A stretch of DNA of 64,000 nucleotides, from NCBI GenBank assembly GCA_047495785.1, contig JBLDXI010000056.1:434001-498000 (forward strand), given 5' to 3'. The notes beneath the pieces were generated by a model. It was not told where the DNA came from. It saw only the letters and a program-made list of their open reading frames with translations, and did no database searches. The stretch is from Lepidodermella squamata (taxonomy: Eukaryota > Animalia > Gastrotricha). Made by a program: the position numbers and the translations under genes. This document shows, piece after piece, positions 13,278 through 32,924 of the stretch (within the stretch, counting starts at the first letter, position 1; every line of letters begins with the position of its first letter).

Positions 13278-13619
13278 TCCGAGCGGATCTATTACAACAC
13301 CTACAAGCATTAAGGAAGCGATACTTAGATGAGTTAGAATCAATGAAGAAAAACGAAAGGTGAATGGCGAAGTAATTAATAATGCGCGATTCATAAAATA
13401 CACGAGATCAAAGGCCAATGAATTGACGTACTATTTTTACTTGGATTAAGGAAAACCGCAAGCACAATTGATGTACGATACGGTGAAAGATACTCTGCAT
13501 GTAAAGGATCCGATCGCATGTTTACTTCGTCGCTTAGCAATATTATTTCTAAAATTGTGTTATGTTAAGAATAATTTGTTTTTAGTCATATTTAATTTTT
13601 TACATAGCAAAGTTCATAA

Positions 13620-25713: not shown

Positions 25714-26870
25714 TGGCGCCGATTCGTCGTCACTCGCCGATCTCCCTATTTGTGTTCTCTTGTGAATGTACTTCACAACAAATTCGTATTCAAAGTATAA
25801 ACTGCCGTTGATTTGAATCATTGAAAATCGATTGAATTCCCACTGAAAATTCAATTTCAATTTCAAAACCAGAAATCGGGAAAAATTCAATGTTTATATT
25901 TGATCATGATTAGCAAATTATTTTATTCAAGACGCCAAAGCTAGATACTCTCGAGACCATAACCATTGAGTGTGGAATTAGTGAGATTTTAATTTTTCAA
26001 ATCAACCGCGTTTGTATTTACTGTCGCTTTGACGGCCCCCAAGTCGTGGCCCGGTTTTCAGACTGGGGCCGTCGTTAAACAAAGACTTGCAAAACTTGAA
26101 ATCTGAGCTCAATTTCTATCTTCTATAATCTATGATGTAATGTTGCATGAAAAGTGCCGATATAGTCCAAATTTACGACTTTTTGTCTTTTCGCACTCAT
26201 GGCTGCTTTTTTGTTGTTTCTCTAATCGAAAATCACTGCGACACTGCGATTGTTTCCAATATATATTGGGCTGAAAATGCGTTATTAGCCAAAAATGACG
26301 ATAATACATCTTTGACATGTTTTATTATTGTCTGATTTTATCTTCATATATTGTATAAAATAAATTCGCGTTCAAAACTCGTGCGAATAATTTTCGATAC
26401 TGTGTATTCAAACTTGACTTCGTGTCCCTACTTTTTGATACCATGCGCCCTCTCATTGTACATTGTTCCTCTCTACTATTGCTATATCATTGTTTGTATC
26501 GTTGTTTCGACACCTTTTCTTGTGAGAGTGTACCTTCTTCCAAAAAGTCTTTATTATTATAATAGTTATGATATCTATTGCAATGTCTAATAGTACTATC
26601 TGTTCTTGTTGTATCATCAACATCATCTTCAGCTGTCGATATTGTCAGAAGGCGACGAAATTTCTAAAGAAGTGAAATCTAAAGAATAAAAATGGTGAAA
26701 TCTATTTACACGCCTTTGAAACAACATGAAATCGATTAGAGCTGGTCGAATTTTGTCGAACTTTGTTAGGCTTGACTAGGAAACTGAAGAGCAGAGAAAT
26801 GCAACCGAGTCAAAGTATCATTTTGTGCTTAACCATTCGCGGGAGAATGAGAAGATTGAAGGTTGCCTGG

Positions 26871-27375
26871 AGGGGTTTTTTTTATTCGCAACAGAAAATA
26901 CAGCTACAGCTACAGTTTATTGCATTCGAAAATTCGCTACAGAAATACTGTATTTCTCCTGTATATTCTACGAATTCGAATAAAAAATACAGAAAATACA
27001 GCCCTATTTTTCCTACAAAAAATACAGCCAGAAAAAGTGTGCAAAGTGTAGAAATGGGGCTGTTTGTGCGCATAAAAAGTGCTGGGGTGAAAATTAGAAG
27101 AAAAAAAATGGCTTGACCCCACGAGGAGTCGAACCCTCCACATCGATTTCGCCTAGTAAACAAAGTCACATTAGCGAATGGTTTACTATTTCTGCATTTT
27201 GCACAGATTCAAAAATCATGTGTTGGAAAAATACACTTTATGCTGTATAAAACAGCGAATTTACGAACGCGTAGAAAGTTATTGCATTTTTTGTAGAAAG
27301 TGCTATTTTCGAACGACAATACACAAAATACAGTATATACTGTTCGAAGTGTTGCGAATAAAAAAAAACCCTCTG
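26871..27375. mobile_element. MITE, about 500 bp, Tc1/mariner-like right end
   Basis: Inverted ends ggg(t)8attcgcaaca (26873-26893) and tgttgcgaat(a)9ccctctg|ta (27350-27377). Internal aaaatacag repeats. Left tip is degenerate. Confidence 0.6.
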
Positions 27376-28093
27376 TATCTACAGATCACTCCCTGGATCA
27401 CTGAGTTTTCATCGCCAATAATTATGTTACGAGTAAATGAATGAAAAGCGGGCGTCAAATGATAGTTTGCAAGTGTCGATTGTCCAAGTATCCGGAAGCT
27501 GATCTCTGATCGCTCGCCGTCAGCTTTCCACTAAACCCACCTTTGTGTTACCGCTTAATTCTCCCGAACGTGGACGGACGATGACCAAATGATCAGATCT
27601 ATTTACGAGTGCGCAAGTACTCACGGTGCAGCAGATCCTCTGCTTTTTCTTATAATTTTTTGAGACTATATTTTGAGAATAATATTTTCGAGAGTTAATT
27701 CTGGTATTTGGCTGGCAATTTAATTTTCCTGCACAATGGCTATGCACTGACTGATATTGCAAGATCATTCCATCAAAAAATAGCTATAGCTACTTCGACG
27801 AAGGAAATGGTTCTGGGGCTGATTAGATGACACAAGGAAACTAGTGAGTATCGAATCGGAGAAAAAATCAAATTCGTTTAAAAACAGCCCAGTTTATTGA
27901 ACAATCATTTTTCATTAAATTAATAGCACCAACATCAGTAAACAATCAACAATCATTGGATGCAGTTTCAGTGTTACAGGAGGCAGCCAGAACTCGTGAT
28001 AACTCGAGCGCAAAAGTGACTTCGCCAATCTGAAAGTAGAGAATAAATATTAGTCAAGTGGCAGAGGATATGTTTACAACTATAAATTTGATA

Positions 28094-28171
28094 TTTGTCA
28101 GATGGGGAAAGAAGACTAAAAAGGTTTTCATCAAATAACTCAGGAGCTTGATGGTTTGTATCATCACGGTA
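28094..28171 (-). ncRNA. Box C/D snoRNA guiding 28S rRNA (snR190/SNORD12-like target)
   Basis: Box C GTGATGA (28167-28161), D' CTGA, C' TTGATGA, D CTGA (28101-28098). The 13-nt guide GTCTTCTTTCCCC is antisense to conserved LSU GGGGAAAGAAGAC. The D' guide TCAAGCTC matches the nearby GAGCUUGA. Confidence 0.88.
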
Positions 28172-28338
28172 ACCTTAAGATTCAACCCTAAAGAAATCCA
28201 ATATTCCTCACCTTTGTATCGAGACCAACGGCGCAGCAAGGAGAAATCGGGGTAGTGCGTGCTGGATCTGAAAAAAAGATCAACATGTTACAGACACCTT
28301 CCCTTCTTAAGATGCTACTTCAAAGATGCAAAAAGATA

Positions 28339-28436
28339 GGATATGGCGCTGCGTTCAATATTAGTCCGAGCGAAACACGACTTCAACGCCCGAGGGCAAT
28401 GAATCACGCACTTTACGGACTGGCTAATCTATATCC
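28339..28436 (-). ncRNA. Unclassified intronic structured RNA (about 98-nt interrupted hairpin, no C/D or H/ACA boxes)
   Basis: Nested stems GGAUAU/AUAUCC, AGUCCG/CGGACU, GCGUGA/UCGUGU, UUCA/UGAA and GCC-CUCG-GGC. The G-U pairs work only on the host (-) strand. Confidence 0.55.
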
Positions 28437-28565
28437 AATGCAAACAATACTTACTTGTAATATGCGGCAGGTTGGATCGGCCAGATCTCAGCAAATGATA
28501 CCTGAAACATAAAACAGACTTAAGATATGGAAGAACAAAGAATGTGTTGAACTTCATGGAGATAA

Positions 28566-28641
28566 AACATCAGAGACCCGTCTTAAACTGAAGATACACA
28601 GTTCTCATGCATGATCAAAATCTCCAGAAATCATCACAAAA
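28566..28641 (-). ncRNA. Box C/D snoRNA guiding 28S rRNA (U21/SNORD21-like region)
   Basis: Box C GTGATGA (28637-28631) and box D CTGA (28573-28570). The guide GTTTAAGACGGGTC is antisense to conserved LSU GACCCGUCUUGAAAC (10 nt perfect, then one bulge). Confidence 0.85.
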
Positions 28642-28783
28642 AGTTTAGAAGTCGAACGACAAAAAAGCAAGACGGCTTACCAAATTAGATCAGCCATTTT
28701 ATTCCATTTCGGACCAGCCAAGAGGCCATGTCGAAAGTCTGAAAGTAAAAAGAAAAATATAGCACCAGTCGTGTCAACCTCAA

Positions 28784-28930
28784 GATTGTGAGTCCTAAGG
28801 CCATCGCCTGTGATGACTGTTGGCGACAACTAATGCACCTAATATTCTTCCATTACGGAACCTAACGGTCACGGCGACTCCGAGCCGGGTTAGAGCTCGG
28901 GTAACTACCGAGAGGTACGGATAGGAAGCC
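28784..28930 (-). ncRNA. Candidate box H/ACA snoRNA
   Basis: Hairpin 1 (CUUCC...GGAAG, with inner CGGU/ACCG and CCGAGC/GCUCGG), H box AGAAUA (28848-28843), hairpin 2 (GUUGUCGCC/GGCGAUGGC), ACA at 28789-28787. Confidence 0.6.
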
Positions 28931-29078
28931 TTATTAACTAATATCAATATCGAAACATACCTGAATCAATTACCAATTAGGCAGCCGATGCGGCGCGAAG
29001 CACGAGCCAAAATCTGGAAAAGAACAAGATAGTTAGAGAAACAACAAAAGGTAATCTCTCTAAGATGATATGAATGAG

Positions 29079-29171
29079 AATCAGACATCCAAGGAAGGGC
29101 TAAGTACGTCTTCCCCGCTATAAACGAGCAGGTCCGTGGAAACCGCGAAAATGGAAAAGGTTTCATCAGAT
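29079..29171 (-). ncRNA. SNORD14: U14 box C/D snoRNA, copy in host intron 2
   Basis: TGATGA box C, domain A TTCGCGGTTTCCAC, and domain B plus box D CCTTCCTTGGATGTCTGA, the U14 signature. Confidence 0.93.
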
Positions 29172-29322
29172 AAATGTTGTTCAATGGCCCATAAAAAGTA
29201 AGGAATACTTACATCGGACAATTTTCCGTCAAGTCAGCATTGAATTGGAGAGATTAAACCTGAAATAGAACAAAAGATTAATCCATGGCACGGAAATCAA
29301 TGGATCATGGATTTCGAGATTA

Positions 29323-29415
29323 AATCAGACATCCAAGGAAGGGCTAAGTACGTCTTCCCCGCTATAAACGAGCAGGTCCGTGGAAACCGCGAAAATGGAA
29401 AAGGTTTCATCAGAT
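29323..29415 (-). ncRNA. SNORD14: U14 box C/D snoRNA, copy in host intron 1
   Basis: Identical over 93 nt to 29079-29171. Confidence 0.93.
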
Positions 29416-29531
29416 TTGGCTTCTAAGAACTAATTATTCCAAGAACTTTAACGTACCTCGCAGAGACCAAGGGGTATTGCTTAGCTCGACGGAAATGACA
29501 CGAGCTGAGTCTTGAAATCGAAGCGATCGAT

Positions 29532-29548
29532 GAGAAGAGGAAATAGAG
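29532..29548 (-). promoter_or_regulatory. TCT-initiator / 5'TOP-like pyrimidine tract at the inferred start of the snoRNA host
   Basis: Minus-strand CTCTATTTCCTCTTCTC contains YCTYTYY (CCTCTTC), about 80 nt upstream of the first donor. This start type is typical of snoRNA host genes. Confidence 0.5.
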
Positions 29549-30032
29549 ATAAATGATCAATGATCAATGCTTGATATTGGAATGCGGCGACAGCCGGTGT
29601 TAAATACCAGTTTTGCACGCCTCGCATCCACATACGCACGCTGCAGCCGCAACGGGTGAGCACGTGTTTGCAGTTCAAGGTTGAATTATATAAACATTTT
29701 AACAGCAAAATTTATTGACAAAATAATATTTCAATAAGTATTTAAGAACCAAGGCAATTTACTGTAATTAATTTAATAGCAGCATATTTTCGAATTTTCG
29801 GGCATGCCTCCGACTCCATCAGACGAGACGGAAACAAGCACCAATAACCGTAAACTTTTCTTAGTTTTCGGTACTTTTAATTATTCCGTTGGCCTCTGTT
29901 TTTTGCTTGTTCTTCGGAATTTTTAGGGGGCCAGTGGCAGAATAATTGCATAAATAACCTTCTTGACAATTCCAGAAAACTTCATCAGCTTTCGTGCCCA
30001 ACTTTATGGACTCGCACTTTTCTTACGTAACA

Positions 30033-30500
30033 CAGTGTGGTCCAAGCCCAAAAAGTTTGGAGTCCGCAGTCGGAGCCCAAAAAGGCCGGGGGAGTCCGCA
30101 CAGGGTATTCAGTAAAATTTGGGGGTGATATGCTTTTTTATGGTTTTTTTGAGGGGGGGGGGTGATATGTATTTACCTATTTACCATTGGGTTCAAAAAA
30201 TTTGTGGCCTGAAAAACTGCTCAGTTAAGTCGACTTGCGAGCGAAGCGAGCTTTAGCTAACGCTTTTTTGAGCATTTTCAAGCCGAAAATGGGCTTAAAA
30301 TGCATTAAAACTTCGAGGATTCATTAACAACCTCTAGTTGGTGACCAATTTCAGGTGAGGGAGTCCGATGGAGCCTGGCGGAGGCCAGGTTCGGAGCCCA
30401 TTTGGAGTCCAACCTCGAAAAAACCCAAAAAACGTTCCGGAGCCCACAAAATGTCGAAAAGAGTCCAAAAGGCTCCGGAGTCCACGTTTGGACCACACTG
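30033..30500. mobile_element. Non-autonomous hAT-family element (468 bp)
   Basis: Perfect 13-bp TIR cagtgtggtccaa / ttggaccacactg, perfect 8-bp TSD acgtaaca (30025-30032, 30501-30508), and repeated subterminal ggag(t/c)cc motifs. Confidence 0.9.
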
Positions 30501-31214
30501 ACGTAACAGACTCTAACACTGTAACGCGATGTTTTTCGCGAGCCTGAAAGGATTTGGCGCAATCTGACGATAGCTCTCATGATTCAGGAGTCATTCTGCA
30601 CTCGGCATTAGATGAATTAGATAAAGCTCACTTCTCCAATCATTTCTTCTCAATATGCTTTCAGTTATGCCATAATCCAAAATGGGAGTCACATTTGAAA
30701 GTCTTCTCCGCCGAGCTAGTCTTGCACTCGACCCATCAAAATCGCGACCCGGCCGCGAATGATCGTAATCGAAATAGGGCCGCGACCAATTTGCGTTCGA
30801 GTCAAAAGTTGGTCGAGTCGAAAACCGGGTCGAACCGTGTTCGCGATAAGATTAATCATCGCATTAGACTTGTATTTAACGCCTAAATTTGCTACTAGGC
30901 AAACTCGCACTGGATCACATGTGTATACTCGTGATATTATTTGCTTCATATGTAGGGACACATATATATTCGAGGTTACTCATTTTCGGCGGTGAAGAAT
31001 TTCTAAGAGCTCAAGCTTTTGCCAACCAACTCGTGGTAACGCTTAATTTTAATTTACAAATTATTAAAATTTATTTCAACACGCTCAAATTTAAATACGG
31101 CATTATTGCGTATCATATGACAAACGGGTCTCCATCGGCTTTATAGCGTCGTCTCAAGTCGGTTCTAACCACCAACAGCCAGGAATTTCGGGCGCAAACC
31201 GGTTTTTCGGCCCG

Positions 31215-32460
31215 TCAGCAGCCACAAAAGCGAACAGCTGGCGATGCACCTAAAAGCAACCGGCTAAGCGCGATAGGAAAGCTAAAACAAGCAGAACCAT
31301 AACTGAATCGGCAGCATCGACAGCTCAAGCCGCCACTCAACAACCAACATCGCAGATGCCGCCGCTGCCAACGTCGACCACTGCTGCTACTGCTGTCGCC
31401 GGTCGCCGCCGCCGACGCGCCTTCGAATAGTGCTGACGAAGGCGGTGTTGCTGCTGCTGCTGCTGCTGTTGCGAGTTCGGCACTGATCGCCCCTGGCTCC
31501 TGCGATTTCAGCTTGCCGGCATTCGCCAACTACCTCAAAGCCAATGGCCGAATTACTGCACTGCGTGTCAATGTTATAAGGAGCATTTTCTTTTCAATCT
31601 CAGCAAATAAGCGCAAATTGTTGATTGTGTCTTCAATGTCTCATCTTTACATTGTCGTTGTATTGAACATTTTCAGGAAGTAATTTTACGCGCTAAGCTT
31701 ACGATAACGCGCGAGCGACTGGCCTACAACGTGCCAAACGTAATGTTCGACGGCCATGTTCGTCGCAGGCCTTCATCGGCGAGCTGTTGCCGGCGCAAAT
31801 AAACCCAGCTACTGAATTGCTGCCGCTGCGTGAGTTGACAGAAATGGCTGTCACCAGCCTCGACGCCGCCGCCATCCGCGCGAGCCCGCAGTACCGCTAC
31901 ACCATCGACCGCGCCAAGTGCACCGTGTTGCTGACGTATGTTGCTGACGCGCTCGGCAATACCGCCGACGATGTGCGTCAGTACGTGTTGCAAACGGCAC
32001 CGGCATTCCTGCCGACCGACATCGAGAACGTGCGCCTGCGAAAGAGCCAGCGCTCGACTGCGTGCGCCGCCATCGTCCGCCTGCGCAATGAGCCAATGGC
32101 GGGCGAATTCATCGATCGAAAACGAAAGGCAGCTCATCATGCAGGCTCTTCTGGGTGTGTTACTTGTTATCAGCTATGCTACTAAATTATCCTCGAAACA
32201 AGTCGAAACAAGTCGAAACAAGTCGAAACTCGCCAACAGCGCGACGCGTTCTGCCGCGCTCGGCCTATATCGTACGGCCGCATGGTGGTAGCTGCGTCGC
32301 CTTTTCTACAACACGCGTGCTGGAGCCGAGCGGCCAGGCGTGGCGGCAACTCGACCCGCGCTTGCCTTGTACGTTACACCACTCATCTGCAAACCGGCAG
32401 CGACCTGGTTCAGCTGCTTTTTCGACGACGGCGAGCAGCCGACTGCTGCGACATCATAGA
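31215..32460 (+). pseudogene. Decayed GC-rich coding-like segment of unknown origin (pseudogene or transposon ORF)
   Basis: Coding-like composition and peptide 31787-32185, with flanking frames broken by frameshifts and stops. Internal (gaaacaagtc)x3 tandem at about 32194-32229. Confidence 0.3.
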
Positions 32461-32924
32461 TTTGAAATATTTGAAAAATAATCCTCCTCCAACCAAACTG
32501 CACTAGATCGAGCACTAGATCCTCCAACTGCTCTAGATCGAGACGAATGGCGTAAAGTTGTCGAGACTTTGGAAAATTTTGAATTTTACAACAAAAGCAA
32601 GATACTCTCGGGGGGTGGGTGCGGGTGACTGATTCTTTTGGTTTGCTTTGCCTTCGCCTTCCTCGAAACCCGAAAGGGTATAGACGCTCAGTCGCGGGGA
32701 AGTAAAACAATATAATCATTTCATTTCCAACCAAACTCATCATTTGACGTAATAAAACGAAATCAACACGCTGGAAAGTTTACAACAAAAATTACTGCAG
32801 CTAGGGCAGCTGATTGCTTGATTCCAACAGAAAACATGAGAATATGAATTCTTGAATTTTATTGCCTTCGTGTAATGCTGCATTATAGCAAAAGTCAAGC
32901 CCAGGATTAAACAAGCAATTCAAG

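Follow-up and report, generated by a model that had tools for sequence, protein, structure and literature searches.

What kind of gene lies on the minus strand between positions 27880 and 29540 of the 64-kb window (the whole stretch of DNA analysed here), and does it matter beyond this one animal? The locus is surrounded by Piwi-like, Trio-like, ankyrin and fasciclin-II/NCAM-like genes, and the window is animal DNA. An earlier note had proposed a seven-exon transcript with tiny exons, acting as a non-coding host of the UHG/GAS5 type with one structured RNA per intron. To us, too, the locus looks like a spliced non-coding snoRNA host of about 1.7 kb, with a predicted guide RNA in each of its six introns (Table 1). 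At the level of sequence, what is seen for it comprises splice signals, boxes, spacing, complementarity and synteny, and we consider it very probable that it is a dedicated host gene of the UHG/GAS5/dUhg type.

Table 1. Features of the putative snoRNA host gene (positions are those of the window).
Feature	Position	Strand	Details
E-box CACGTG, extended context MAACACGTGY	29660..29669	-	holozoan ribosome-biogenesis promoter element; fly-consensus match
TATA-like GTATTTAA	29600..29607	-	same 8-mer downstream of CACGTG in the relative (L001/L002)
TCT/5'TOP-like YC+1TYTYY motif	29534..29540	-	candidate C+1 at 29539
Exon 1	29457..29539	-	83 nt; 5' end uncertain, may reach ~29575
Exon 2	29213..29259	-	47 nt
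Exon 3	28961..29013	-	53 nt
Exon 4	28681..28738	-	58 nt
Exon 5	28455..28501	-	47 nt
Exon 6	28212..28267	-	56 nt
Exon 7	27880..28029	-	~150 nt; AATAAA at 27898-27893; 3' end approximate
Introns 1 to 6	29456-29260, 29212-29014, 28960-28739, 28680-28502, 28454-28268, 28211-28030	-	n=6
U14/SNORD14 copy 1, intron 1	29323..29417	-	C box 29412, domain A 29393-29380, D guide 29342-29329, D box 29328
U14/SNORD14 copy 2, intron 2	29079..29173	-	93 nt identical with copy 1; unrelated flanks
H/ACA snoRNA candidate, intron 3	28784..28929	-	146 nt; H box ATATTA 28845-28840, ACA 28789-28787
Predicted C/D snoRNA, intron 4	28568..28641	-	C box 28636, D guide 28587-28575, D box 28573
H/ACA-like snoRNA, intron 5	28283..28424	-	142 nt; hinge ATATTG 28361-28356, ACA 28288-28286
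Predicted C/D snoRNA, intron 6	28096..28171	-	four perfect boxes: C 28166, D' 28143, C' 28133, D 28101

Gene model and proposed mode of action

Strong donors and TTYCAG acceptors number exactly six each in the gene region and follow one another strictly in DADADADADADA order. Dinucleotide shuffles of the region contained 1.3 acceptors on average, with six or more in only 1 of 500, and a mean of 2.5 donors, six being reached in 18 of 500. The introns that these signals delimit are 179–222 nt long, with 5' ends of the form GT(A/G)(A/C/T)G and 3' ends TTTCAG or TTCCAG. TGATGA is found five times in the gene region against a shuffle mean of 0.9 (2/500 shuffles match), and the pattern of C box, D box, 55–80 nt and acceptor appears four times in the 64-kb window, every time inside the host gene. 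The D boxes of these four C/D RNAs end 65, 67, 68 and 68 nt before the acceptor, the last figure being that of both intron 4 and intron 6. The alternation of donors and acceptors beyond that of shuffles supports the proposed exon–intron layout, the AATAAA that had been listed with it is present, and splice signals, boxes and spacing together support the interpretation as a non-coding host whose introns each carry a snoRNA.

[quoted passage not shown] Two U14 RNPs would serve 18S processing through domain A and direct Cm formation at the C414/C462 site, two C/D guides would direct LSU 2'-O-methylation at G2395 and at a C near the U21 site, and two H/ACA guides pseudouridylation at the LSU U960 site and the 18S U71 site. 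The spliced exon RNA, about 490 nt with short ORFs only, would be a by-product and is probably degraded.

The intronic RNAs and their predicted targets

An Infernal/Rfam scan, which the earlier note had suggested as a check, supported the identity of the U14 copies and of no other cargo RNA convincingly. No match anywhere in the window reached its gathering score, and in E-value mode U14 alone was convincing, the remaining cargo RNAs being assigned to no family. Copy 1 matched RF00016 with 46.2 bits (E 4.9e-8) and copy 2 with 38.7 bits (E 5.5e-6), against a gathering score of 64. Since six of seven U14s in other invertebrate contigs likewise fall under this score, we regard the shortfall as a limit of the Rfam model. 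The window U14 aligns with these other invertebrate U14s and has the C and D boxes, domain A and the domain B guide, and its D guide makes a 14-bp match to the 18S C414/C462 site (Cm414/Cm462) that none of 60 rRNA shuffles could equal. The placement of U14 in introns 1 and 2 is supported by the sequence. Compared with SNORD14/U14 as modelled in RF00016, the window copies differ, besides their scores, in a C before the C box, an internal 6-bp hairpin and extra U's before domain A. The two copies are identical only within the snoRNA, and the intron sequence around them does not align, which suggests selection or conversion limited to the RNA.

The two extra U's, at 29397-29388 and 29153-29144, set these copies apart from the other invertebrate U14s, and they may reflect an altered 18S sequence in this animal. 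Elsewhere, an invertebrate contig (L004, 2873-4916) carries five U14 copies in apparently one intron of an RPL7A-like gene, with SNORD36 and two further C/D RNAs in its other introns, and a contig of another invertebrate (L006, 806-904) has U14 in an RPL5-like intron and an H/ACA-like RNA in the preceding one; both gene names were read from the exons.

Guide targets were scored on the rRNA of other species, using two fungal rDNA units deposited as plasmids together with invertebrate-type rDNA found as contaminants. The former (NZ_CP130289.1 and NZ_CP087163.1), deposited as bacterial plasmids, are complete eukaryotic rDNA repeat units of fungal type. Among the fetched contigs none looked human, and one (L008, 8560-8650) joins a virus-like contig to a eukaryotic LSU rRNA fragment and is probably a chimeric assembly.

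Both C/D guides that had been claimed to match the LSU, in introns 4 and 6, held up on these sequences with 13 bp each, a length that was equalled in 0/60 shuffles for either. The intron-4 D guide pairs with LSU GACCCGUCUUGAA in 8 rRNA sets, and the D+5 rule would place the methylation on the middle C of GACCCGUCUUGAA, 2 nt 5' of the U21 target, which itself lies 10 nt before the U18 site. This RNA matches no Rfam family, and no sequence homology to U21 (PMC2794176, PMC2653536) was detected. The D guide of intron 6 (28116-28104) is predicted to target the third G of GGGG, LSU G2395, the site of snR190, snR107 and SNORD12 (yeast numbering, counted from the U2417 and U2421 sites), and the RNA gives a weak snR107 match in Rfam (E 0.06). 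A methylation role for its D' guide was rejected: the best match, 21 nt 3' of G2395, is only 8 bp long and 23/60 shuffles did as well, which is not above chance. The second TGATGA of this RNA was likewise rejected as a true C box, as no D box follows downstream. We found no clear counterpart for the shifted methylation sites in the published literature, among the matches listed.

The RNA of intron 3 folds into an 82-nt 5' hairpin (z -2.96), followed by ATATTA, a weaker 3' hairpin (z -1.6) and ACA, with the pocket at the canonical distance (14–16 nt) from the box; the H/ACA candidate reported for this intron thus has its boxes and its two-hairpin layout, the 3' hairpin being weak. Its 5' pocket could form 5+5 bp with 18S ACGGGUAACGG, on either side of the U, which precedes the U14 site by 56 nt, and the same offset separates Psi367 (U71/snoR86) from Cm423 in chicken. 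This match was reached in 6/200 shuffles with a hand-picked pocket and in 29/200 with a rule-based one, and the pocket weakly fits the U71/snoR86 site, less strongly than the intron-5 match to Psi960. An identity of the intron-3 RNA with snR30/U17 was discarded, given that the m1/m2 motifs are missing.

Intron 5 had been described as holding a boxless hairpin. What we found instead is a 142-nt arrangement of hairpin, hinge, hairpin and ACA, each hairpin with a z of about -2.5 (-1.84 for the entire fold), with a pocket at the usual 14–16 nt distance from the ACA that would fall on a conserved Psi site. The hinge ATATTG is one base off the H box ANANNA and sits in the same register as the H box of intron 3. 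The 3' pocket is predicted to pair with LSU UUUCCCUCAGGAUA by 6+6 bp that enclose its U, in 8 rRNA sets (0/200 shuffles hand-picked, 5/200 rule-based) and fits the yeast Psi960 site (snR8; human Psi1664, ACA56). The 5' pocket might pair 6+3 bp around a U lying 44 nt further along the LSU, perhaps the Psi1004 site (snR5/ACA52); yeast Psi960/Psi1004 and N. crassa Psi940/Psi984 are also 44 nt apart. Hand-picked pockets had been chosen after looking, and in the rule-based repeat, run with 200 shuffles, the two of the four H/ACA pockets other than the Psi960 and U71-site matches were not above chance. The predicted targets of introns 3 and 5 coincide with the sites of snR8/ACA56, snR5/ACA52 and U71/snoR86 (PMC2794176, PMC2653536), no sequence homology to these RNAs was detected and the equivalence is by target only. 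Only 21 nt separate the intron-5 ACA from the end of the intron, and the branch point probably falls in the same zone. A pre-miRNA was rejected in view of the 6x6 internal loop, the second hairpin and the ACA, and on balance we take the intron-5 RNA to be, with good probability, a real H/ACA guide.

Promoter, neighbourhood and a syntenic relative

Sequence searches recovered a metagenome contig (L001, with variants) in which Trio, Piwi, membrane, ankyrin and fasciclin genes follow one another in the same order, at 65–77% DNA identity to the window. At the same place and on the same strand it has a two-exon non-coding host (intron ~13347-13529, AATAAA ~13620); no closer relative with a six-intron host was found in these searches. 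The intron holds one C/D RNA (13386-13457), which is without domain A and whose D box ends 74 nt before the acceptor. The guide of this RNA, 13 nt long, matches 18S in the U14 region, and the methylation predicted from it falls three bases 3' of the U14 target, at a position flanked by that site and the U83/snR52 site. Homology of this RNA to any of the window cargo RNAs was rejected, no local alignment being significant, as was purifying selection on it (0/69 vs 13/394 substitutions, p ~0.1).

Upstream of the host gene, CACGTG followed by GTATTTAA is found in both the window and the relative. The alignment of the two promoters is overall not significant (297/1000 shuffles), so the orthology of the hosts rests on position, strand and this pair of elements. 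The E-box of the window matches 10 of 11 bases of the ribosome-biogenesis consensus of the fly (PMC2570694), and its extended form has three matches in the window against 0.5 expected. The earlier note had placed a TCT/5'TOP-like start at this gene. The motif is there, and as a start it is doubtful: it is common (139 matches in the window), it was not found at the relative's host gene, and the TATA-like element common to both species would place the start at ~29575, about 35 nt upstream of the TCT candidate. snoRNA hosts with dual YC/YR starts have been described (PMC6954239).

A second GTATTTAA is present on the plus strand within 29660-29745, about 80 nt past the palindromic E-box, and could make the promoter bidirectional. 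Immediately upstream of the promoter lies a 468-bp non-autonomous hAT-like element (30033-30500). Its terminal inverted repeats are perfect over 13 bp and start with CAGTG, and its target duplication, ACGTAACA, measures 8 bp. Downstream of the host, a MITE-like element (26870-27373) has 24-nt terminal inverted repeats that are 96% complementary and no clear target duplication. A GC-rich insert at 31200-32500, missing in the relative, contains a 132-aa ORF (31787-32185, plus strand) without a Pfam match and is possibly a mobile-element remnant.

Rival readings and known host genes

A real host gene whose intron 5, and perhaps intron 3, lacks a functional H/ACA RNA and holds a chance hairpin or other small RNA is a reading that we rate as rather unlikely. 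The imperfect hinge, the ACA overlapping the probable branch point, the modest z of the whole fold, the lack of an Rfam match and the pockets initially picked by eye all speak for it, and have to be balanced against a 12-bp pocket at the canonical ACA distance on a site conserved between yeast and human, a hinge in register with a perfect H box in an RNA of nearly the same length (142 vs 146 nt), and the occupation of all the other introns. Far less probable is a second role of the host, be it in coding for a micro-protein or as a functional lncRNA. Dual-use hosts have been published, an own lncRNA role being claimed for GAS5 and mamRNA, and the longest ATG ORF of the joined exons (494 nt) has 67 codons, over exons 4–7. 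However, the starts of three shorter ATG ORFs precede it, the internal exon lengths break frame, and no exon was similar to the relative's intergenic DNA at the locus in exon-by-exon blastn and tblastx, the relative's host having two exons only. The 100% identity of the 93-nt U14 repeat might even recall a dead copy or an artefact of assembly or duplication, but it does not extend beyond the snoRNA, the intron sequences on either side differ and every splice signal and box is intact, so that this explanation deserves next to no credence. We therefore keep to the dedicated non-coding host in comparing the locus with genes already described.

Like vertebrate UHG (SNHG1), GAS5, U17HG and ZFAS1 (PMC7277114; 10.1101/2024.10.03.615557), the window gene has short non-coding exons, one putative snoRNA per intron and a poly(A) signal; it shares their pyrimidine-rich start as a candidate only. 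ZFAS1 hosts SNORD12, which guides the G2395 site, and the window host carries a predicted guide for the same site. It differs from the vertebrate hosts in its cargo set, mixed C/D and H/ACA, and in its compact 1.7 kb, and vertebrate U14 sits in HSPA8/hsc70 introns, unlike the U14 copies found here in a non-coding host. The Drosophila Uhg genes are also polycistronic untranslated hosts, some with both snoRNA classes, as described for the mixed Uhg-46E3 (PMC5932544); in the open-access literature we found no report of a fly Uhg with the window's cargo set. The earlier note had implied that the combination of cargo was novel. This we cannot follow, given that five of the six cargo RNAs are aimed, by prediction, at known eukaryote-wide sites, that mixed non-coding hosts have been described (PMC5932544), and that snoRNA locations drift between broadly expressed hosts, which makes reshuffling of cargo the published norm (PMC3511168). 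As the layout is well known from flies, mammals and fungi, the gene is a new example rather than a new mechanism.

The U14 copies and the G2395 guide stand on one transcript model in the window. In three fungi the two kinds of RNA likewise come from a single non-coding transcript, namely the snR190-U14 dicistron of S. cerevisiae, mamRNA/snR107 of S. pombe and cluster V of N. crassa (PMC8536666, 10.1101/2024.10.03.615557, PMC2780460). The pairing could thus be a chaperone cassette inherited from an opisthokont ancestor, the animal counterpart of the fungal snR190-U14 unit, a reading that we hold to be unlikely. In the window the order is reversed, four further RNAs are present, and the G2395 guide is a 70-nt RNA in which no second element pairing with LSU domain I was found. 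Its G2395 element lies upstream of D, and not upstream of D' as in snR190, snR107, CD16 and SNORD12. Guides are known to move between D and D' at times (PMC5824354). Neither RNA is present in the relative's host, U14 lies in the RPL7A-like and RPL5-like introns of other invertebrates and in HSPA8 in chicken, and intronic location is unstable across eukaryote evolution (PMC3511168). Coincidence is likelier than inheritance, given the reversed order, the D-side guide, the lack of a second element and a host in the relative that carries neither RNA. It is improbable in our judgement that this animal keeps an ancestral opisthokont link between U14 and the G2395 chaperone/guide, so far seen in fungi only, along with guides shifted by 2–3 nt that methylate sites unmapped in yeast, fly and human. 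If ancestral, the link would be the sole aspect of greater specialist interest.

For snoRNA biology at large, the dedicated host described here appears to keep its position as its cargo turns over, with six RNAs in the window and one different RNA in the relative. Such turnover at a fixed locus would illustrate the 'constrained drift' model (PMC3511168) and poses no challenge to it. For the animal itself, the locus contributes five predicted rRNA modification guides that Rfam missed at its standard threshold. To our knowledge, it has no published snoRNA catalogue, and the gene described here is the probable main U14 locus of such an animal.
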